NCBI GenBank assembly: GCA_020536535.1
Contig: JAHLWZ010000801.1
Span: 75,095-139,094 of the forward strand
Origin: Pelomyxa schiedti
Taxonomy: Eukaryota; Protista; Evosea
Length of the DNA stretch: 64,000 nucleotides
Reading direction: 5' to 3'
The translations under genes were made by a program, and so were the position numbers. This document shows positions 47-31,701 of this stretch, one piece after another. The number at the start of each line of letters is the position of its first letter. The first letter of the stretch is position 1. Below the pieces are notes generated by a model. The model ran no database searches, was not told where the DNA came from, and saw nothing but the letters and a program-made list of their open reading frames with translations.

Positions 47-3000
47 TTAACCAAATGTGAGTAATATGTTAGGATCCAGAATCAATGGAGTTGAGGATGA
101 TGGATTGAGCCTCTGTATTCTGCCGAGAACGCTTGGTGCCACAGGATCCGGCATCAGAGAATCCGGCTTGAACGAGTGCACAATGTGGGCAAGCTGGACT
201 GGGTTAAGTGCGCTGAAGGCTGTGTGGACTATGGTCTCGTCAAACAGCACTGCCTTGTCCATGATGAGCAGGTTCCCAGCTTGCTTGATGTGGTCCAAGC
301 GCTGCCTGTGAACAGATAGATAGGTAGTGGAGGTGAGATAGGAGAATATAAAATGAGTGAGAGGTGGTTTTACCTTGCACGGCTGAGGAATGCACTCTGG
401 TACAGGAACTCTTCAATTGAGGAAAGACCTAATTTGATTTGGAATCCTTTTCCACACGTGCCTGTTCAATCAGAGGGGAAAAAAAAAAAGTAAGCATTAA
501 AATTTGGTCACAAGGGGGTGGATACAGCATCCAGGTTGGTTGACAAGCTGGTTGAAAAGTCGGGCGTTTATCCAGTAGCACAACTGAGAGAAGAACTGGA
601 AGCAAATAGACCGGGAAATTCCATTGTCAAGAAGTCTTTGGAGTGTTTCCTGGAGAATCTGGATAACATCAGTTATGCTGGGCCCTCCTTTTGGTTTGGC
701 AGCAGCGGATCTTTTTTTTATTTAGGTGTTTTGAAAAAGTGAAATCAAGTGAAAATGGATGCCTCTACCTAGAAGCACCGCTCACCCTGAGTTGTTCAGG
801 TGGTTCAAAGATTGCTTGGCACAGGATTCCGTCAAGAATCTGTAAGAAAATAGGTTCAATCCCGAAGGTGTAATTAATAACGAGGGCATACATGCTCTGT
901 TCTTTGCAACAGCATGAAGAATATTTCGTGAAGTACTTGTTGTAATTGGAACACGAATCGAGGGACCTCACCCTCGGGTGCCGCACTGGGCTTCAAGATG
1001 TACTCTGTCCGGCTGAGTGCTTTATGTTATCCAAATAGAGGTAAAATCGATAATAGGAGGTTACCTTGGTGGTACGAGAGTCCCTTGCACGAAATTCAGA
1101 AGACTCCAGGTCACAGTTACAAAGTATGTGGACATCATGAGGTTGTCTTTATACCCCTGGGAAGTAGTTTGTTTTTGAATCAAACCGAAAAACCAAACTA
1201 AATTACAAGTTGTCGTACCAGTGAGATAGTCTTTATTCTCTCAGCTATTTTCTCAAAGAAGTCACTGTCCGGCTTTTTCAGGCTGTTCCATTGCTGCAAT
1301 CGGTCTATGATAAGCAATGCTGTGCAGGGAACACCTTGGGCGTCAAATAGTGATGAATCAGCACTGAACAGTGCATTGAGGAGGAATTCTTCGATTTTTA
1401 GCTTGTGCTCTGCTTGCTATGTTCGTTAGTGACTCAAGGGGAAATAAGAAAATGAAACCTGGACTTTAGCTAGTAGTTGCTTATCTCCACTTTCCTTCAC
1501 GCAAGTCATTAATTCCCATAGATTTGATTAAAAGAAAATGGGCCACCTGGGCATGACGCTCCATCTTTTTCTTTGCTTTCTGAGATTCTTTCAATTTTTT
1601 GCGTAGAGATTCTAATTCCTGTGCATCTTCTTGGCCTACTTGAAGCTGATTACGCAGTTTCTCTTCCAATTCATCCCTATCACCCTCCAACTTCTTGACT
1701 TGCTCTTTGAGCTTTTGCATGGTTTGGAGCATTTGTGTTCTGGTCCCTTCCAATTTGGATATTTGATCACGGGACTCTGCTCTAATTTTTTCGGTGTCAT
1801 GGAGGAACTGTGCTTGTCTGTCAGTAAGGGACGATTGCAGGTCGGTGGTGGTTTTCCGCGTATTGGAAAGCTGGGACTGCAGGTCTGCATTCAAGCAAGT
1901 TTGTTCCTAAGTAAATTTCCTTTTTCATGGGTTTATTGTAGATTGATAGAAATACATACATTAAGCTTGACTTTGAAGTGAGACAATTCTGACGACAGTT
2001 GGGAATTTTGACTTTCTAACTCGCTCTGCTTATGGCGCAAATCATCGATTTCTTGAAGTGCAGTGCGCAGTTTATTTGATAACTCATCTTTTTCAGCATT
2101 CAGTTCTGTAAGTTGCTGGGAAACTCTGGCCAAGGAACTGGTTTCAGATTCTAATTTGTCCAGGAGGTCGTGATTGCTATCTCGTAAAGTAGCCACAGTG
2201 CGTGAGATAGATTCACTGCTTTCAGCCCCCGAATTCCCTGATGCTGCTTGTTCCACTCTTTTGGCCAAATTATCTCTCTCTTCCTTCAATCTGTCAATCT
2301 GAGAAGTTTTGTGTTTGAGCTGCTGTTGAAGTTTTTCCGAATCATCAGTTTGTCTCTTCAGTTCAGTTTTAAGTCGTTCAATGTTAGACTGTAAATCTGT
2401 GTTGGTTTTTTTGGATGTCTGCAGCTCAGTGCGGATTTGCTCAGTTTGGGTGTTGTTGTGCGACAACTTTATAGTCATCTCCTGTAAGCTGTTTCTAGCT
2501 GCTTCAAGCTCTCTGTGTGTAGCAGTTTCTTTTTCAGTTGCTGTTTGCAGTTGTTGCTGTAGATCCGCTTGAGCTGCACCTGAAGATTGGAGGAGAAGCT
2601 GCCTTTCTCGCTCCCAAGTTGCAGTTTTGGTTATCAATAAGTCTTCAGCAAGTTTAATCTGCTGGTGCGAACTGTTAATTTGGGATTCTGCTGTTGCAGC
2701 TGCAGCCCGAGTTTCTATATTGGCTTTCTCAAATTGATTGGTAATACGTGCCACATCTCCTTTCAGTGACGTGACAACCTAAAGGGAAGGTTACAGGTTG
2801 AAAGAAGTCATCTGGAAGAAACCTTCAATTGCTCCTGCAGTTCAGCTTCAAGTGCCACCACTCTCTTATTGGAGGTGTCAAGTTCCACTTTCAGGCCTGC
2901 ACACTTGGTTTCTAACCCTTCATCGGGTTTCGCAATCAATTCTTCCTTATTTTTATGTCCCCTCTCAGCTTCTGGGTGGGAGCTGAGGTTAGCAAGCTTA

Positions 3001-4789
3001 GATTTGAAATCAGCAACTGCTTTTTGACTTTCCGCGTACTGTGCTTTAAGGCCACTATTTTCTTTCGAGAGTCCAGCCACTTCTTCTTCATACTGCCTAA
3101 CTTTAGCTTTGGTTTGCTCCATCTCAATGGTGAGTTTTTGAAGTTGTACAGCGACATCCTCTTTTACTGGTTTCTTCTGCTTTGCAGCCATTTCTTCTGA
3201 TTGCTTCAAGTCAGCTTGGGTTCTCTCCAATGCCGTTTTCAGGTCAGCTATTGTTTTTTCACTGCGTATCTTCTCCGCATTCATTTTCTTTTCCAAGGCA
3301 GTGAGCTGTTCTGTGAGCTGTGTATTGGATTCCGCAGATGAACTTTTACTTGGGGTGCCTTTGGCCTCAAGAACTCGAATTTGGGCCACCAAGTCTGCTT
3401 CCTTAGTGGAATGTGCAGATTCGATATCACGGATGTGGTTCTCTTTCGAGAGCAAATCATCTGTATTGTGGGTTTAAGCACGTAATGGGGAAGGTGGGGG
3501 TTCAAACCTTTGACTTTCTGGTGGTCTGTGGAAAGTTCAGAAAGCTTAGTTTTCAATGTTTCTATCTCTTTCGTAGATTCATGCTGAGAGTGCTTAGCTG
3601 ATTTCTCTTTCTTGTCCAGTTCAGTTTTTAGGGTATCACGGGATTTTGTTAAGGTGGCAATTTGTTCTCTGAGAGAACTGATTTCATCGTTGTGCGGGGA
3701 TGCATCAGTGTGAGTGTCACTATGTGTTGGAACTGAGCTGGGAGATTTAGGTGTAGTAGTGGTTTCATCTTTCACTACAGGTGCACTCTCTCTGTCTTCC
3801 TCCCTGCTGGAGGATGAATGGTGTCTTGAATGTGAATGCTCTTTTGAAGAATGAGAGGAGCTGGTCTCGCGACTGTGAGACTTTTTGCTGCTGTGAGAAT
3901 CTTTGTGAGGTGAGGATGGAACTGATTCCTCAGCTGCTGTGGTACTTGGAGCAGGGGCAGTGATGCTAATTGTAACTGATGGTGATGTAGATGCCGTTGG
4001 TTTTGGTTCAACAGCGGGCTTGTCCAATTTGTCAGGTTTGTCAAATACATCAGATTTGTCTTCAGCTTCGAAGTCGACCTTTTCTTCATCTTCATCTTCC
4101 TGAACAGGGTTAAGTGGGTATAGTATATATGGTTTACATCAGCTTCAGACAACAGCACATCAGTTTCATCTTCTCTTTGGAAAGTGAAAAAGAAAATATC
4201 AAGAAATAAGATGGAGATACGCTGCGGATGTGACTCCCAAATTTTCAGAGGTAATTTTAATCTAGAAGAATTACAATTAAAGCCATTTCAGGGAAATTAG
4301 TACACACAAGTAAAGAAAGAGGCCCGCCCTTAGAGCCTTTTTTCTTGAGATTCAGTGTGGCTGTCTTAACAGCGCCACCAAGATCGGCATAGTCACTCAT
4401 ATTGACTGTGGTTTTACCCAATGTCCTCTTTTTCTTTCCCTTATCCTCCTTTACGTAGAAGATAATATTTTTGGCATCCTTTTATGTTTTGGTTTGTTAA
4501 GTTGTCCGATTTGTACCCAACCCGCAAGACGATAAAAAATACAAAATTAGAATAAACATTGCAATACATAAGACGAAGCCTCCTTGAAAAGTGTGCAAGT
4601 GACAGTTACGGTTTCGGCCCACTCGCACGTCCCGGCCCTGACCGGCTTCGAAGCCGTTGTGCCTTGGTTCTCTTTCTTGGAGCCTCGCTTCCACCCCACG
4701 CACGCCGACGAGACCCCGTCGGGTAGCCCAGTGGCCATCACGTACGTAAGGCGGTAACGTTGCTTCACTGCTGGCTTCTTCTTGAACAT
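47..4789 (-). CDS. NT-type C2 (EEIG1/EHBP1-like) domain + long coiled coil + C-terminal DIL (dilute) domain protein, multi-exon
   Basis: First exon from ATG 4789: MFKKKPAVKQRYRLTYVMATGLPDGVSSACVGWKRGSKKENQGTT...CEWAETVTVTCTLFKE (NT-C2 pattern WKRG...G.T...W.E). Heptad-rich exons 1481-3455. Last exon ...FSALNPVQLAHIVHSFKPDSLMPDPV... resembles the DIL C-terminus; TAA at 47. GT-AG introns link the ORF pieces. Confidence 0.78.
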
Positions 4790-6028: not shown

Positions 6029-9000
6029 ATGGCAGACCCGCCCTCAGCCGCCACACCGCCGCCACCAACCTCACAACCACCAATCTACCCGCCACAACTT
6101 AGGCCTGGGTCGGGAGTCTCGTCTCTTTTGCTCCTTCCTCCCCAGCAGCAGCAGCTCTCGTCCCTGCGGCCTCCCCCGCCGCCCCCTTCCTCGCTGTCCT
6201 CCTCCCCCTTGGCCCCCGGGGCCCCGCTTTCTCGGGCCGCCCCTCCCCTCCCTTCCGCCTCCCCGTCCGCGCGGCCGCCCCCGCCCCAGTACCAATCCGC
6301 CTCGTCCGGCAGGTCCTCCCCCTCTACCTCGCCGCTGCCCCCCTCGCGTCCCCCCTTTCTCGCTGCCGCAACCACGGCGCCCCAGTCGGCTGCTGCTGCT
6401 ACTACAGTAAGCCCCGCAGCCACGATGTCGACCACTAGCACTAGCACTACGATTATGGGAATGGGGATGGGGGGTAATTCCAGTGGTGCCGCGAATAATT
6501 CAGTTGGGGGTGACTTAATGCTACTGGCAACATCGACCAACGTGAAAGCAAAGTTGAGCCCCGCGGAATCCCTGGAGTGCATATTGTGTGTTGGGCCACT
6601 GGTAATTTACCTCACTTGTGATTTCATTTCCTTTTCTTTGTAAAGTTATCTGTATTCCCTAACACTCAACTTTTTTTTTTTTTTTTTTCAAAATGTTAAA
6701 TTTGGGGATATTCAACTATGTACATTCAATACTGACTGGGACGTTGTGGTGCAGAGAAAGGCGGAAATACTCAAATGTGGGCACTCTTTTTGTTCTGAGT
6801 GTATACGGCAGTGCATCCCAGTGACGCACAAATGTCCTGTGTGTAGCAAAGAATGTACATTAGACGATCTTACTGTAGAATATTCCCTGCGACACATTGA
6901 GGAACTGTGTGCTCTACAGACATTCCTTTTTTTTGTACTCACTCCATCCCAGAACACAGAACAAAGCCACTGTAACCAATGAAATTTTGGAGCTAATCAG
7001 GTTTGACCAGAGAGTCACAGAAATTCTTTGTCCAACTTCTTTTCAGGAGGCTCAGGGAACGAGCTCTTCAGACAGAAATTGCCACGAGACAACACCAAGA
7101 ATCCCTCAATGCCTGCCAGAAGCTTGAAAATGAAAAGAAACGGCTTCAAGCTGAAAAACAAGACTCGGCAAATGTTCTTGCACAGCAACTGCAACGACTG
7201 GAAAAAGAAAGAGATGATCTCCGAAGGAAAGAGAAAGAGGCTCTGGACAAATGGTTCGAATCCCAAAGGTTGAATCGCGAGCAGTACAGAGTTTTTGAGA
7301 AACAGAAGCAAGAATTTGAGCAACTAAGACGTGAGAAGGGGAATTTGGAACAATTGCTGGAAAGAGAGAGAACACTGGTTTTGGCATTCTTTTTTTCCGT
7401 TAAAATAGGCTTACTTCTATTATTCACAGGAAGAAGGAATTCGCAATTCCGGTGAACAAGAAAGATTACAACTCCAAACCCAACTAGAATCTGTTCAGGC
7501 ATCCAAGCTACGTTTTGAGCAAGAGAAAGCAAATGCACGTACCCTACAGTTCTAGGGTCACTAATCACCACCCCAAAGATAGAAGCACAGCTGCAAAACT
7601 TGCAAGCACAAACACTGAAAATGACACAGGAGGCAGAAGAAGAACGCCTTGCGGCATGTGTCAAATCACTCATCCTACGAACAATAACCCCAAAGTTGTA
7701 GCTTCAAAGAGAGTTGGACCTGATTAGGCGGAATGCAGAAACCGTTGAGCAGGACAGAGCAACTGTGTGGCCTTCCTATGATAATCTTGTCCCTAATCAC
7801 TAATGATACCAGTCTCTTGGCCAATTGGAACAGCTTCAAAGTGCCAAAGTCAATCTAGAAAAAGAATTAGAAACAGAACGCGCTAGTGCTATGCTGGTTA
7901 TCTATATATGTGCTGTAAAAGCAATACCAACGGTAAAAATAAGGCTCAAACTGAATTGCAACGACTAAATGCTGAGAATGAAGAATTAGAAAGGACCTTT
8001 TTAGCCCAACGAAAGTTGGTTGTCAAACTCATGCAAGTGCCACAACACCTAACCTTTTGCTTAGGCACAAGAGGGAATTGAACAAAAAGCATTTCTCGAA
8101 CAACAACTAGAGATAGAGAAAGCAAAAGCTGCCCAAGAAAGAGCTCAATTTGAGTTACTGCTGGAACAACAAAAAGCAGCCGTAACTGCATCCAGAAATA
8201 GTCAATTTTTCTTAATCAGTTTCCTAGTATTCTCAGATGCAGGCTGAGCTCAATAGAAAGGAGGCTGTCATCGAGCATGTGGTAAGCCTTTACTCGTAAT
8301 ATCAGCAACTAACAAACAATTCTAGTCGGAACAAAATCGAGTTTTATCGCAGCAGGTACAGTCTCAGTCACTACCATTACAATCAAACATTTCTTGCTCG
8401 AAAACGACTAAATCAACTGAAAGTACTAGTGGATGGGGAGGTAGTTTCATTGTATTCTGGCTCTTTGTCTTACTAGTACTACGGGGGAAAACAAAGATAG
8501 TTTTATGAAATTCGTGTATTCATGGGTCCCACCAATGACCGCCTCAGTGATGACATCTTCTGCGAGTGGAGAGTTCATCACCTCAATAGATCAATATACT
8601 CTTCACGAACAGCTGGGTGAAACAACAGTATTTTTTGCATACAATTCTGATTCGATTTAATTTGAATGCAGGATATGACTTTCTTCAGAGCATCTAAAAA
8701 ACAGTATGTGGTATGATTCTCTTGATCATTGGGAGTGTTTTGTATATGTGCTAAATTGAAAAACCCTTTGATTCTGGTTACAGATACTCTAACGCGTCTG
8801 TGTCACTGAAGAAGCTTCCTCTTCCTCCTTTACCGTACAAGCAGCAAGAATTGATGAACGCATTTCGGTTGAGAACACTCTCCTTTCAGCACTCTCCTAA
8901 CCTTAAATCATTCTAAACAGTTATCCAATGTTCCTGCACAAACTATCTCATAAATCCATTGTAAAAATAGTCTCCCTTGTACAGACTCCAAATGTGAGCC

Positions 9001-9900
9001 TTCTCATGATTTCTATTAAAAAAACCCAAGTGTCTTTGACAAGAATCCCAGGACTACATCTATGTGTCATTTCCATATTATAAATACGACCTCGACTTCT
9101 TGATCCGCCAAAATCGTCTCTCTTTTGAGCAAAAGGTTCTCATCACAAACCATATTTTACACGCTTTGAGCTATTTACATTCTCGTGAAGTTGTATGCAT
9201 TTCAACAAAAATCGGCGTACATGAGATCCTTACCCTTCCTCAGGTACATCGCTCGCTAAGGCCATCAGCAGTATTTTTAAGCACTACGAACCTCAGTGAC
9301 TCCGCACCGGCAGTTATTTGTTCTTTCGACCATGCTCTTTGTTTGCCACAACTTCAATATGGTCAGGGATCGCCGCCGCCTTGTACTCGCTACCACCCCC
9401 CGGAGGTCCTCAATACACCTTCAATGCCGGTACAGTGGAAGAGTGCTGACATGTGGGCTGCTGGGTGCATTCTAGGTGAAATGCTTATGGGTAGAGCACT
9501 ATTCAGTGTAGCTGCAGCGCAAGTTTGCTCCCATTCCACTGTACTCACAACTAACATATTCTTTCCAAAGTCACTTGGGTTTGCAGCCACCAAGCAGTAC
9601 TCACAAGCATTCCCCGTTCTGCAGTGCTGCACTTCTCATGGATTTTCCGGCCTGTCTAGGCTTCCAGCCTTCCAGCAGTACCCCGCCGACCTTATTGCTC
9701 TACTAGAGCGGCTACTCTGGTTTGCACCCACACATAGGCCCACGGCACAAGAAGCCCTGAACCACACATGCTTTGCTCCAAGAGCGGCTGTAAATTACCC
9801 TCCAGCCACACCTGAGGAATTGGTGGCTTTCTCTGACGTGTCTGTGATGGAGTTTCTAAGGCAACAACTGCCCTCCATGGCCCAACAGTGTGTACCATAA
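6029..9900 (+). CDS. Pro-rich N-terminus + C3HC4 RING finger + coiled coil + MAPK/CMGC-like pseudokinase domain
   Basis: LECILC...ILKCGHSFCSECIRQCIPVTHKCPVC (RING). Coiled-coil exons 7003-8300. Kinase-fold exons: VSLKKL, YKYDLDFLIR, HALSYLHSRE, VHRSLRPSAV, CSFDHA, TRYHPPEVL, SADMWAAGCILGEML, LLERLLWFAPTHRPTAQEALNH. TAA at 9898-9900. Confidence 0.8.
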
Positions 9901-9967
9901 CAAGAATCAAGAACAAAAAGAAATAAGTGTTCTGGAAAAGGATACAACTTTCTCAATTATGAACATT

Positions 9968-12880
9968 TACCAACATGAGCAAACGCACAAGCAAACAATC
10001 CACCCTTGTACGGTTAAGTCCATATCCCACAGATTCTTCTTCTCGTTCTTGATGTACTTGTCAGCAAGTTGTGTTCCCTCATTTGCGGCGGCAGCGGAAT
10101 TGAAAGTGGTGAAGGTGGTACCAAGACCTAGAGGTAGAGACTGTTAGAGTTTAATTGGGACTTCAAGGTAGGATTTACCGGGTAGGAGCTTGTATGTGAA
10201 ATCACAGTACCCTGGAAGTGCATTGAGGTAGTTGAGCCAGTGGGATGAAAAGTCAGCAGCCTGATTGGTGGTGAGTTTCGTTGAACTCACTCTTACCATC
10301 ACTTTCAAATCTGGTGCATGAAATTAGCTTGATGGGAGAAGCACCCTCACGCCTATTTTTTGGCTCACCAATTTGTAAAACTTTGTCTGGTGAAGGGAAG
10401 CCAATTGCCAGGCCCATTTGGTTGGAATTAGAGAGTGATTGAAGGGATTGCAGTTGTGGTAGAGCCTGTTGGCCCGTCTGCTGAGGTTGAGTGAGTTGAG
10501 TCGAGGAACCTACTTGCTGTGCATTTGCTGCTAGGGACACCACTGGGGAGCCATTTCCTTTTGAAGTAAGATGCGCAATCAGTACATTCTATAGTAGTAT
10601 ACTTATTGATCTCCCTTTCTCTAGAGAGAACGGAGGGCTGCGAACTACTTCATTCCCCGGAAGTTCAAGTACTAGTTGAACGGTGGATTGCAGATGTTCA
10701 CTATTTATTTTACGTGTTCAGTCGGGTATGTCCAAGTGATAAAATTGGAAAAACCTGGAGGATGAGCAGTGACTTTTACAACGATCCAATGTGCAACACA
10801 CATAGCCATTGGGCATTCTTGCAGCTTCAAAGACTTTTTTACTAGATGCTTTGAGGGTGATAAGCTTTCCAGATGTAGAGGAACAAATCGGGCAGTGCAC
10901 GGCTGCAAATCTTATTAAAACTGATGCGCACGTTTTGGCTCGATACCCTCATTGGTTCCTTCTTTGCAGGTTTTCATGTTTCTTACACATTGCTCAAAAA
11001 TTTTCTCGTCTGTGAGACCATGTTGCGTTCGATACTCAGAGCTCATGATAAGGTGGACCTTATTGCGGGATCAACCTAGATTTCTGCTGTGGGAGTGCGG
11101 TTTACCTGGAAGCTTTTGTCTCGATGAATTTTAGTGGTGCTAAGATGAAGTACACAGTTGTTCCCAGAATGAAGTTTGTGCTCCACCTCGTGATAAATTT
11201 GCTGGAGTTGCTCGTCGTTGAGAGGCTCTGCATCAATATAAACAATGTTTCATGGAAATAAGATAAGAATACCACTTGTCACTAGTGGGGTTCCGGACTG
11301 CTGAAGGGGAGATGATCCACTTGGCATAGTCAGCCCCATTGTCATGCTTAAAGCCTGTGCTTGCTGTAATACCGGAGCTAACCCTCCGGGATGAGATACG
11401 CCACGTTGTAATGCTGAGAGAGGTGAATATTGAGTATTGTTGGGCAGATACCATTGACTAAATCGGGGCTGTTGAGACCCAACGCAGCTGGAGCACCAGG
11501 CAGATCCGGTAGGCCATTCCATGTACTGTCGAACTCCGGAGAAGATTCCGGGAATGTAGGTGTTGTAATATCACTACTTGATGGAGAATGCAGTTGTTGA
11601 AGCAACTGCTGTGAAGGTAAGGGAGTGGCAGCACTATTTAATTGAGAATCGGTTGCATTGGATTGGATAGATGACACAGTGGAATTGCTGGGGGTTCCTG
11701 AGGTTGAGTGGGGGTGTGTCACATCTTGCATTTCAGGAAGTCTTACAACTTTACGGGGAGGGGCCTGCATGAAGTCTTATTTATTGTACTGTGGATTTTT
11801 GGAAGATGAATTTACCACAAGGTCCCCTTCTGGATGTGTTCCAGAGGATGAATCGTTTCCCAAAGGCGGCTTGGAAAAGGTTAAATGCAACTGCTAAAGA
11901 TAGTAGTATGGTACTTGTAATGTCCCCAAGAATGCAAGTAACGAAGGAGCATCATTTCCAAAAAGATTCCTTAAACTACCAAGAACATTATTCATGTTGC
12001 TTGTTTGAAGAAGTCTGGAAGCAGTGGTGTCTCCAGGAGAGTTGTTTATCGTTCCCAGACTGGAAAGGCTTGGAGGAAATCCTGGATTACCGCCATTGTT
12101 TGTTCCACTTTCCATTTGAAGTCCACTTCCAAGGCCAAGTCCTCCCATGGGTAAGTTGCCCACTGATCCCAATGCACCCACGTTTCCGGGTGACAAACCA
12201 CCCATGGGTGGCAGCCCAGTTAGTGAAGAAAGCCCAGTCAGTGAAGAAAGCCCACTGGTACCAAAATTTCCCAGACCCATAGGCAAGTTCATTGGATTGG
12301 GAGTATGCAACGCAGGCATGCTTCCCATTGCAGGGGTGCCCAATCCAGACAAGTGTCCAACTCCACTATTACCCATTAAGCCAGCCAATCCCAAATTTCC
12401 TAAGTTCATATTGCCGAGTCCCGTGTTTGTTGCCGATAAGACTCCTGGCATGTTCATCATTCCGAGAAGAGCACTCAAATTCACACCACTGCCACTAACA
12501 GGGGGTGTTGAAGATGGTGTACTATTTGGGGTTGGTGTGAGAGACTGTGCTGATGGTGTGTTTTGTAGGTTCATTGAAAACGGTACTGCTGTAGAAACCA
12601 TGTATTGTTGTGATGGGGGATTGGTTATTGGGGTACTAACGTTACTGGAGCCTCCAAACTGAAAGGTTGGTTGTAGATTTTGAGGTTGAGATGATGAAAG
12701 TAATTGTGCTATCTCGTTAATGACAGCAGGGGTGGATGGAGCCAATAGAGAAAACCCCCCGGATGTGGGGTTTTGTTGTGTGTTAAAGCTAGGTTGTTGA
12801 GGTGATTGTTGTAAGTGTAGTAGTTGCTGCATTTGGAGGTTTTGAATTTGTTGCTGGAGGTTATGTGGGGGCATATTCAT
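9968..12880 (-). CDS. Hypothetical protein: Q/N/G/M-rich low-complexity N-terminus and a Cys-containing globular C-terminal region (possible transcription regulator)
   Basis: Long ORFs 11894-12883 and 11378-11770 are low complexity. Spliced downstream exons encode VHCPICSSTSGKLITLK...YVCCTLDRCKSHCSSSR and DLKVM...AADFSSHWLNYLNALPGYCDFTYKLLPG. The 3' end is approximate. Confidence 0.55.
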
Positions 12881-31007: not shown

Positions 31008-31400
31008 ATGTTTCAAAAAAAAAAACTCTTTGAATGGTGGTGAGAAAAAGGGCACAATAATTGGCTTCTTACGAACGGAAAGGGAAAAACCATCGTGGCA
31101 TGCAAGGAGGAGTTTGCGGGGGTGCCGTGGAGATGCTGACAGCCTATCAAGACGCCCATAACCGGCATAAGGGAAGGTCACTTTTATTCTGCCGTCTTTC
31201 CGATCCAGGGCCCCTGCGATGTTTGTTGTTTCTCAACTCGGCCCAAGACAGTTCTCACCCCCACCATCCCACAAGTCGGAGTTACGGAAAATTTTTGAGC
31301 ATACAAGCGGGGACCCCGCCCCAAACTTTGGCCCCGAGGTCTGTGTGCGGCTATCCTTTGTCCTCTTGTTGCCGTGCTACATCGAATTCTAAAACCAAAC

Positions 31401-31572
31401 AACTATGACTCTCTTAAGGTAATAACCAACCACCCAACTAGTGGCGAGCGTTTGAGGATGACGAGGCGGCTACCTTTAATTCCCCAAGCACTCAGCGCTA
31501 ACTCCTTCCTGACCTGGGAGGAGCCCCTTGGGTAAAGGACTGCCGTTGCCGGCCTCGGGGTCTTATTTTTTT
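31401..31572 (+). ncRNA. Candidate structured small ncRNA with LSU-rRNA-related segments (class unknown)
   Basis: Intergenic with no ORF. 21-nt identity to conserved LSU rRNA (AACTATGACTCTCTTAAGGTA, 31401-31421). Antisense LSU segments GATGACGAGGC (31457-67) and GGCTACCTT (31468-76). Long nested hairpin 31459-31562. Ends in AT7G. Confidence 0.4.
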
Positions 31573-31701
31573 GGGGTTTGCGGTTTTATTTATTGCCTTG
31601 TGTGTTTGTTGTGTAACATATGTTTGGAACCCACCATAACCAAATACTTATGCAAAATAACCAATAATGGTTGGTGGGAAGTAAAAGAAACAAGAAACTT
31701 T

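Follow-up and report, generated by a model that had tools for sequence, protein, structure and literature searches.

The non-coding RNA (ncRNA) genes of Dictyostelia that depend on the Dictyostelium upstream sequence element (DUSE), which encode small nuclear RNAs (snRNAs), the signal recognition particle (SRP) RNA and the Class I RNAs, carry the motif CCCA(C/T)AA about 60 nt before their start (PMC7919456, PMC3188802). In Dictyostelium itself the element has been given as [AT]CCCA[AT]AA, ≈63 bp 5′ of ncRNA genes (PMC3188802), and it serves genes of RNA polymerase (Pol) II and Pol III alike (PMC7919456). The 5′ and 3′ ends of these genes pair, and many of the genes end in a T-run (PMC7919456, PMC3188802). 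We have found a locus with the same combination of features in a 64,000-nt window of genomic DNA from the anaerobic amoeba Pelomyxa schiedti (GenBank assembly GCA_020536535.1, contig JAHLWZ010000801.1, positions 75,095 to 139,094), at window positions 31330-31572 on the plus strand; all window features described below lie on this strand. P. schiedti is an archamoeba, and the RNA predicted from its locus differs from the dictyostelid Class I RNAs, which are 42-65 nt long and share an 11-nt CCUUACAGCAA motif that is absent here, in being ≈240 nt long and in carrying modules derived from rRNA. A small RNA gene of this kind, ≈240 nt long and present in two diverged copies, has not been described before, and we found nothing comparable in the literature.

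Limits, promoter and second copy of the gene

We searched the P. schiedti assembly (52,367,397 bases in 5337 contigs) with the locus by BLAST. The published assembly, given as 52.4 Mb in 5337 scaffolds, was obtained from whole-genome-amplified single cells (PMC8887013). Three matches were returned, namely the window locus, a 100% identical inverted copy on the same contig, and a diverged copy on contig C306. The C306 paralog aligns by BLAST to window positions 31329-31572 only, at 77% identity, and the flanks are unalignable on both sides. The similarity stops at a T-run (T7 in the window copy, T13CT5 in C306), and its limits coincide exactly with the predicted ends of the gene. A first-pass annotation of this DNA had drawn a structured RNA candidate at 31401-31572 and had proposed a BLAST search of the genome for further copies. 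The single diverged copy that this search yields redraws the unit, because the similarity begins ≈70 nt 5′ of 31401; the fold of 31401-31575 is no better than that of shuffled sequences (z = −1.4). For the full-length unit, the minimum free energy (MFE) lies well below that of shuffles in both copies (z = −4.8 for the window copy and −5.6 for C306). No additional family member was detected in the genome by BLAST, by motif searches or with a covariance model (R1) built from the two copies, which finds only these loci. With the ends placed in this way, the transcript would run from ≈31330 into the T-run at 31566-31572.

Upstream of the gene, a DUSE-like element, also resembling a proximal sequence element, is present as TCCCACAAGT (short form CCCACAAGT) at 31268-31276, 62 nt 5′ of the base at which the terminal helix described below begins. 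The paralog has the same motif, as ACCCACAAGT, at −63. For comparison, we located the U6, U2, RNase MRP, RNase P and SRP RNA genes of this genome with Rfam models and read their flanks. In the 150 nt upstream of every reference gene read, CCCA[CT]AA occurs exactly once, and in 17 of these genes (9 U6, 6 U2, RNase MRP and RNase P) the motif sits at −53 to −68; its background frequency is 2.7e-4 per nt per strand. Between the element and the start lies a T-rich box, AAAATTTTTGAG, at 31288-31299 (about −42 to −31), with AATTGTTTTTTGCC at the same place in the paralog. Similar T-rich boxes occupy the interval between element and start in the U6, U2 and MRP genes, which suggests a promoter role for the box. 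At the other end, the T7 run at 31566-31572 has the form of a Pol III terminator. T-runs end the U6, MRP, P and SRP genes of this genome and are absent from six U2 genes; because our gene ends in the manner of the former and not of the latter, its RNA is most likely made by Pol III. The first-pass annotation had read the 3′ end as either a Pol III terminator or an Sm-like motif. The terminator is retained, and the Sm-like part is not, as the G that follows the T-run is absent in the paralog. Within the window, this is the only occurrence of CCCAYAA that is joined to a T-rich box and a T-run at plausible distances.

Taken together, these features indicate that window positions 31330-31572 very probably constitute an independently transcribed, functional gene of the Pol III type for a structured ncRNA of ≈240 nt. 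The unalignable flanks, together with a covarying terminal helix and a core conserved in sequence, form the signature of a structural RNA under selection.

Three further observations concern the surroundings of the gene and of its reference set. A second CCCATAA, at 31155-31161, lies 113 nt 5′ of the gene's own element and has a T-rich tract after it; it has no counterpart in the paralog and may be either fortuitous or the mark of a different start. In the SRP RNA genes, the element (CCCATAAGTA) lies 14-22 nt before the start of the match to the Rfam Metazoa_SRP model rather than at the ≈60 nt seen in the other ncRNA genes, so that SRP RNA here may have a ≈40-nt 5′ extension beyond the model or its genes another promoter geometry. 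The window corresponds to the reverse strand of C801:1-63988, and the inverted copy lies 74 kb away on that contig (window 29880-33100 versus C801:104974-108194). It is part of a perfect palindrome with a symmetry axis near 69.5 kb and arms of at least 37 kb each, which may be real or, given that the assembly comes from whole-genome-amplified single cells, a chimera of amplification or assembly.

Terminal rod and LSU-related modules

The RNAalifold consensus closes the predicted RNA with a terminal rod, in which 31330-31363 pairs with 31530-31562. The rod comprises 28 pairs, all of which are formed in both copies; 13 of the pairs are variable, and in 7 of these both partners have changed. In controls with the partner strand displaced by one to three columns, only 41-59% of the cells remain paired and zero to two double changes are seen. 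At the very ends, GGCCCCGAGGTC (31330-31341) is complementary to GGCCTCGGGGTC (31551-31562), and the C306 equivalents GGCCTTGTGGTC and GGCCATGAGGCC are likewise fully complementary through changes on both strands. Identity between the copies is 61% in the rod and 82% in the interior.

Within the rod, the block TGTTGCCGTGCTACATCGAAT at 31367-31387, for which a small hairpin is predicted, is identical at 21/21 positions between the paralogs. We considered this block as a promoter and rejected the idea: it has no counterpart upstream of the U6 genes, and because the covarying terminal helix encloses it, it belongs to the RNA. A match to the block with three mismatches on C1463 is due to chance. 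A second invariant block spans 31486-31511, and like the first it bears no relation to rRNA. RNAalifold predicts a long irregular hairpin at 31439-31500 that carries one double compensation (GGA/TCC to GAA/TTC); most of its pairs are invariant between the copies and are hence uninformative. It is followed by the hairpin CTCCTTCC-TGACCT-GGGAGGAG at 31502-31523 (31502-31509 paired with 31516-31523), of which 8/8 pairs are kept in the paralog with two one-sided changes. This helix is the one part of the nested four-helix hairpin of the first-pass annotation that survives comparison. The other three helices keep 10/17 pairs in the paralog, and their 3′ partners belong to the rod, where they pair with 31330-31363.

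The interior of the RNA holds two segments related to LSU (large ribosomal subunit) rRNA. The first is the sense block AACTATGACTCTCTTAAGGTA at 31401-31421 (RNA positions 72-92), which corresponds to the loop of helix 69 (H69), its 3′ strand and the adjoining junction and is predicted to be single-stranded. The annotation had noted its identity to conserved LSU sequence over 21 nt, and comparison with the organism's own LSU gene on C544, which reads ...GGGAGTAACTATGACTCTCTTAAGGTAGCCAAATGCCTCGTCATTCAATTAGTGAC..., gives 21/21. In the paralog, 19/21 positions agree (CTCTTAAGG becomes CTCCAAAGG). Allowing up to three mismatches, the 21-mer occurs in the whole genome only in the LSU gene, at the window locus and at one further locus; we estimate the chance that the ≈9-kb LSU and 64 kb of DNA have a 21-mer in common at ≈3e-4.

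The second segment, at 31457-31476, begins 36 nt 3′ of the sense block and is a bipartite antisense arm composed of GATGACGAGGC (31457-31467) and GGCTACCTT (31468-31476). It lies at the tip of the 31439-31500 hairpin and is complementary to LSU AAGGTAGCC[AAAT]GCCTCGTCAT in H70/H71, pairing over 11 + 9 nt with the AAAT skipped. This too had been recognized in the first pass, and the organism's own LSU refines the picture in one position. The P. schiedti LSU reads GUCAUU (GTCATT in the gene) against GUCAUC in the Rfam consensus, so that the first G of the window arm would form a G·U pair, whereas the C306 arm has an A opposite that U. The C306 arm, GAATGACGAGGCAT + (T)GGCTACCTTAAG, pairs over 26 nt with LSU 8169-8196 (C544 coordinates), and only AA is looped out. 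The predicted duplexes with LSU reach −42.3 kcal/mol for the window arm (shuffles, −25.1 ± 2.5) and −49.3 kcal/mol for the C306 arm (shuffles, −23.0 ± 3.1), which places both of them 5 to 8 standard deviations below shuffled arms. The two arms thus differ in sequence and yet both remain complementary to LSU. For every other block of the RNA, a search across 10 kb of 5.8S-ITS2 (internal transcribed spacer 2)-LSU, with small-subunit rRNA outside its range, revealed no complementarity above background. A candidate third pairing, with the 5′ strand of H69 (AUUCCC × GGGAGU), amounts to 6 bp in the window copy and 3 bp in the paralog and carries little weight.

Between the two segments, a hairpin resembling H71 can form at 31430-31444 (CCAC-CCAACTA-GTGG) as an alternative to the base of the 31439-31500 hairpin. 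It is collinear with LSU GTCAT-TCAATTA-GTGAC and, relative to LSU, has been kept by changes on both strands (GTCAT/GTGAC to CCAC/GTGG). The collinearity with LSU in this region 3′ of the sense block is weak, with CAA(C/T)TAGTGGCGAGC aligning to CAATTAGTGACGCGC at p ≈ 0.02 in each copy; in a local alignment of the paralog to LSU past the sense block, 0/500 shuffles reached the score observed. The loop of the paralog hairpin, CTAATTA, equals the Rfam LSU consensus. We regard the collinearity of this hairpin with LSU as suggestive. The H71 loop of the organism's own LSU (L005 1520-1530) is GUCAUUCAAUUAGUGAC; the Rfam eukaryotic consensus is GUCAUCUAAUUAGUGAC, so that CU has been swapped to UC, and the paralog loop keeps the CUAAUUA of the consensus.

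From this arrangement we infer, on statistics that are modest, that the interior of the RNA is an old fold-back copy of the organism's own H69-H71 region in LSU domain IV. The hexamer TGAATG is common to sense LSU (...CATGAATG|GATT) and to the antisense strand (TTGAATG|ACGAGG) and stands at the point where the RNA switches from sense to antisense. Under such an origin, the 18 nt of the sense arm complementary to the antisense arm (GCCAAATGCCTCGTCATT) would have been replaced by ATAACCAACCACC. Past the arm, no significant collinearity with antisense LSU is seen. We also considered the arm as a homolog of the 3′ strand of LSU H70 and rejected this, since in the Rfam LSU structure GUAGCCAAAUGCCUC is single-stranded and the partner of CGAGAUUCC lies far upstream. 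The LSU gene on C544 (L090 127-10000) is itself spread over ≈9 kb, with 5.8S at 127-260 and conserved LSU cores at 974-1857, 2838-4114 and 7553-10000+ that are separated by very large inserts or expansion segments, and the contig turns palindromic within the LSU 3′ end.

Candidate roles of the RNA

No Rfam family matches the locus at its gathering score or at E ≤ 10 in the covariance-model scan that the first-pass annotation had proposed. Elsewhere in the genome, U1 (25 copies), U2 (at least 33), U3 (8), U6 (at least 21), RNase MRP, RNase P and SRP RNA all score above gathering; because all seven are found, the Rfam models evidently work in this genome and the RNA belongs to none of these families. 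An identity as RNase P or MRP, SRP, U1 or U3 RNA was likewise rejected on the grounds that the canonical genes lie at other loci. Many of the 25 U1 genes form head-to-head inverted pairs ≈130-300 nt apart, for example C455:34088-34250(−)/34384-34542(+), with such pairs on C455, C448, C290, C966, C171, C716, C1082, C22, C1151 and C918.

The first-pass annotation was right to find no well-fitting C/D, H/ACA or U1-U6 signature. Box C/D small nucleolar RNAs (snoRNAs) hold a C box (RUGAUGA) and a D box (CUGA) next to a short terminal stem, and their guide ends 5 nt before D or D′. The locus offers only a degenerate GGATGAC and a sole CTGA (31508-31511) that is lost in the paralog, no Rfam C/D family reaches threshold, and the target nucleotides would be bulged instead of paired. 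Box H/ACA snoRNAs follow a hairpin-hinge-hairpin plan, their guide pocket is split, and an ACA stands 3 nt before the 3′ end; the 3′ ends of the two copies (GGGGTCTTA and GAGGCCATC) contain neither ACA nor AGA, and the guide halves are contiguous. Group I introns are defined by a P3-P9 core, a G-binding site and a U·G pair at the 5′ splice site. The locus has no RF00028 match, the U of AAGGU would pair with A and not with G, and the unit lacks a 3′ exon and is of insufficient length. No tRNA-like element is present at the locus: TCGAATCC in the paralog resembles a box B and precedes a box-A-like TAGTGG, which is the wrong order.

Of the readings that we have weighed, we favor a box-less, Pol III-made, U8-like RNA that would pair with nascent LSU domain IV, and we assign it a probability of roughly 0.4. 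The ends of the RNA would close into the rod, and its interior would present the sense arm (H69 loop, 3′ strand, junction and probably the H71-like hairpin) followed by the antisense arm. Because the cis-pairing part of the sense arm was replaced, the antisense arm would be free at the tip of its hairpin. It could then bind nascent LSU in trans at AAGGUAGCC/GCCUCGUCAU, a target that covers the junction following H69 together with the 5′ strand of H71, with two to four A/U residues of LSU looped out of the duplex. In yeast, where these residues are modification sites, their numbers are A2279-U2282, next to m5C2278 and including Am2280 and Am2281. In this manner the RNA might act as a snoRNA-like placeholder or chaperone that holds these LSU strands until domain IV is ready for folding or modification. 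As for the sense block, it might cover the arm in cis through pairing of AAGGTA with TACCTT, might mimic H69 for a shared factor, or might be mere ancestry. Among the first-pass proposals had been an LSU-pairing guide or chaperone with AAAU looped out. This is still the best reading and is somewhat strengthened by the arm of the paralog, which pairs over 26 nt with AA alone looped out and has an A opposite the lineage-specific U.

Several points weigh against the chaperone reading. LSU identity need not mean a function related to rRNA, since any purifying selection on a tract derived from LSU freezes the ancestral sequence, which is that of LSU. In the predicted fold, part of the antisense arm is engaged in pairing within the RNA itself, and the chaperone model leaves the role of the sense block unexplained. 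Two sequences provide almost no covariation in the interior helices, and the polymerase assignment comes from motifs only. Orthologs were not found: a first search pattern gave 0 matches in metagenomes, GTDB genomes and IMG/VR, scans that did not extend to other amoebozoan genomes, and a second pattern, applied to metagenomes only, returned chance coding matches or LSU genes with a 3-nt variant.

A bolder version of the chaperone reading strikes us as doubtful. It would make the RNA the representative of a new class of eukaryotic guide-like RNA, made by Pol III, lacking snoRNA boxes and derived from a folded-back copy of its target, whose bipartite antisense arm and sense copy would together open LSU H69-H71 during 60S assembly and expose the modification-rich nucleotides of H69/H70. 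Alternatively, since the sense block and the arm can pair with opposite rDNA strands, the RNA might address the rDNA duplex at the site favored by R2 and by I-PpoI-type introns.

The rival that survives best, although we consider it unlikely, is a functional Pol III RNA in which the LSU-like tracts are frozen ancestry from an rDNA fold-back and which now has a job unrelated to rRNA, for instance as a scaffold for proteins in the manner of vault, Y or 7SK RNA. The whole interior is ≈82% conserved, including the invariant blocks without rRNA relation at 31367-31387 and 31486-31511, and vault and Y RNAs are generally built in this way, with a long terminal panhandle and a Pol III terminator. On the other hand, Rfam returns no Y, vault or 7SK match, and ≈240 nt is more than twice the usual size of a Y or vault RNA. 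The behavior of the arms also speaks against frozen ancestry: both of these differing sequences keep or extend their complementarity to LSU, and one change, the A of the paralog, matches the U that is LSU's own variant.

Somewhat less probable again is a mimic or decoy of LSU domain IV, in which the H69 loop, the copy of its 3′ strand and the H71-like hairpin would titrate or recruit H69-directed snoRNPs, an assembly factor or helix 44 of the small subunit. The complete identity of the sense block, its predicted unpaired state and the retention of the H71-like hairpin through changes that are compensatory relative to LSU would all suit such a role. H69 itself cannot form, however, because its 5′ strand is missing. 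The collinearity past the block is weak, the LSU covariance model gives no match, and the paralog alters 2/21 positions of the block.

We consider it improbable that the locus is functionless, as a decaying rDNA chimera or an artefact of amplification or assembly. The origin of the assembly from amplified single cells, its palindromic contigs and the presence of stray rDNA fragments make the concern a reasonable one, and the first-pass annotation had named an assembly chimera with rDNA as a case that would undo its candidate. The paralog comparison already largely refutes this reading, with two loci on different contigs that are 77% identical and show compensatory changes, a common promoter and terminator, and unalignable flanks. 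The stray fragments are of another kind, lying 96-100% identical to rDNA at C571:12674-12806, C356:7273-7374, C1732:3356-3430 and C2024:318-349, and 74% identical at C138:6382-6482, without promoter or terminator context. They are probably chimeras or dead insertions; for want of that context we rejected the notion that they and the gene form a class of rDNA-derived genes.

Slightly more improbable still is an origin as the remnant of a mobile element that targets this classic rDNA site, be it an R2-type 5′ junction with a 28S tag, a hepatitis delta virus (HDV)-like ribozyme or the footprint of a group I intron or homing endonuclease. Exact LSU identity does end at AAGG|TA, no more than 2 nt from where R2 inserts and inside the recognition site of I-PpoI, and R2 RNAs can carry upstream 28S sequence. 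The 5′ end of R2 is marked by an HDV-like ribozyme, a nested double pseudoknot whose P1 starts at the cleavage site, in an rDNA-inserted element with a reverse transcriptase open reading frame (ORF). At this locus the LSU block lies 71 nt inside a transcript with its own promoter, and because both copies share promoter and terminator, the duplication took place at the level of DNA. Rfam gives no R2, HDV-like, group I or other ribozyme or intron match, and by inspection the spacing misfits an HDV fold, with 26 nt between the putative P3′ and P1′ strands. There is no rDNA context; the neighboring genes encode a Sel1-repeat protein and a RhoGEF, and no reverse transcriptase or endonuclease ORF is found nearby. 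The sole assembled LSU gene is uninterrupted at the site, and the weak LSU collinearity runs past the supposed junction. The R2 or homing-endonuclease relic put forward in the first pass is therefore not supported.

A telomerase RNA, such as Pol III makes in plants and ciliates, is very improbable. Its core-closing helix would be the rod and its template the single-stranded interior, and the size, the promoter type and the closing helix would fit. A match to the TERT RNA-binding domain exists on C931, and a review on the subject describes no amoebozoan telomerase RNA. A telomerase template spans about 1.5 telomere repeats and is conserved between functional copies. Yet no segment equals 1.5 copies of any repeat, and there is no CCCTAA-type template even though short TTAGGG arrays exist. 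The A/C-rich tract differs between the paralogs (CTAAAACCAAACAAC versus CCAAAACCCAAAC), and the LSU modules would have no place in a telomerase RNA. The TERT-domain matches (C931:32777-33290) contain in-frame stops or an intron. The TTAGGG arrays of the genome are few, short (4-5 units) and internal, and the backwards control (GGGATT)4 is seven times commoner (21 versus 3 places).

To the last of the first-pass proposals, a spliced-leader (SL) or Sm-class RNA with an 18-nt leader ...CTCTCTTAAG ending in AAG|GTAAT, we give almost no credence: SL RNAs have a short exon at a capped 5′ end followed by a GU donor and then an internal Sm site before a 3′ stem-loop, and although AAG|GTAAT resembles a donor that could pair with the downstream TACCTT and a U-run lies near the 3′ end, the promoter position and the covarying terminal rod place the 5′ end at ≈31330, so that the "leader" is internal and the putative exon would measure ≈89 nt, the paralog changes the leader sequence and has no Sm-like G, and the U-run is terminal, marks the end of the similarity and is a Pol III-type terminator unlike the ends of the U2 genes.

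Significance and relation to described small RNAs

H69-H71 form the main intersubunit bridges, are heavily modified and are the classic landing site of rDNA-specific mobile elements. If the RNA does pair with pre-LSU rRNA, it would join the small RNAs that bind pre-rRNA and belong to neither the C/D nor the H/ACA family, a category of which RNase MRP is, to our knowledge, the only established example. Its sequence would, moreover, still record how such an RNA arose from an inverted copy of its target, which is rarely seen. Should the LSU-like tracts be ancestry only, the locus would be a lineage-specific orphan ncRNA of modest interest. The upstream motifs also show that the Dictyostelium-type element (CCCAYAA at about −60) operates in Archamoebae, where it provides a practical tool to find additional orphan ncRNA genes in poorly studied anaerobes.

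Each of the better-known RNAs that this one recalls shares some of its features. The 5′ junction RNAs of R2 contain the same 28S segment, ending at approximately the same nucleotide; here that segment is internal to a promoter-driven small RNA, and the element body, the HDV-like ribozyme and the rDNA context are lacking. RNase MRP RNA is the sole classical nucleolar RNA that Pol III makes in animals and that is free of C/D and H/ACA boxes, and in this genome its gene, found on C811, has the same promoter element and a T-run. It differs in its P4 pseudoknot with CR-I and CR-V, which has no equivalent here. Young plant microRNA genes can arise when their target gene is duplicated in inverted orientation, and their origin is apparently similar in that the folded-back copy supplies an antisense arm. 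Those genes, however, yield Pol II hairpins that are cut by Dicer, whereas here one arm has been remodeled, the hairpin is gone and a long structured Pol III transcript is predicted. The proposed mode of action resembles that of the U8 snoRNA and, more loosely, of U3 and snR190, in which a long antisense element pairs with a conserved LSU strand that has to pair elsewhere later and so serves as a placeholder; U8 occupies the 5′ end of 28S. Unlike these RNAs, which are non-modifying box C/D ribonucleoproteins acting as pre-rRNA chaperones, the P. schiedti RNA does without C/D or H/ACA boxes, and appears to combine a Pol III-type gene and a 30-bp panhandle with a sense copy of the LSU sequence adjacent to its putative target.

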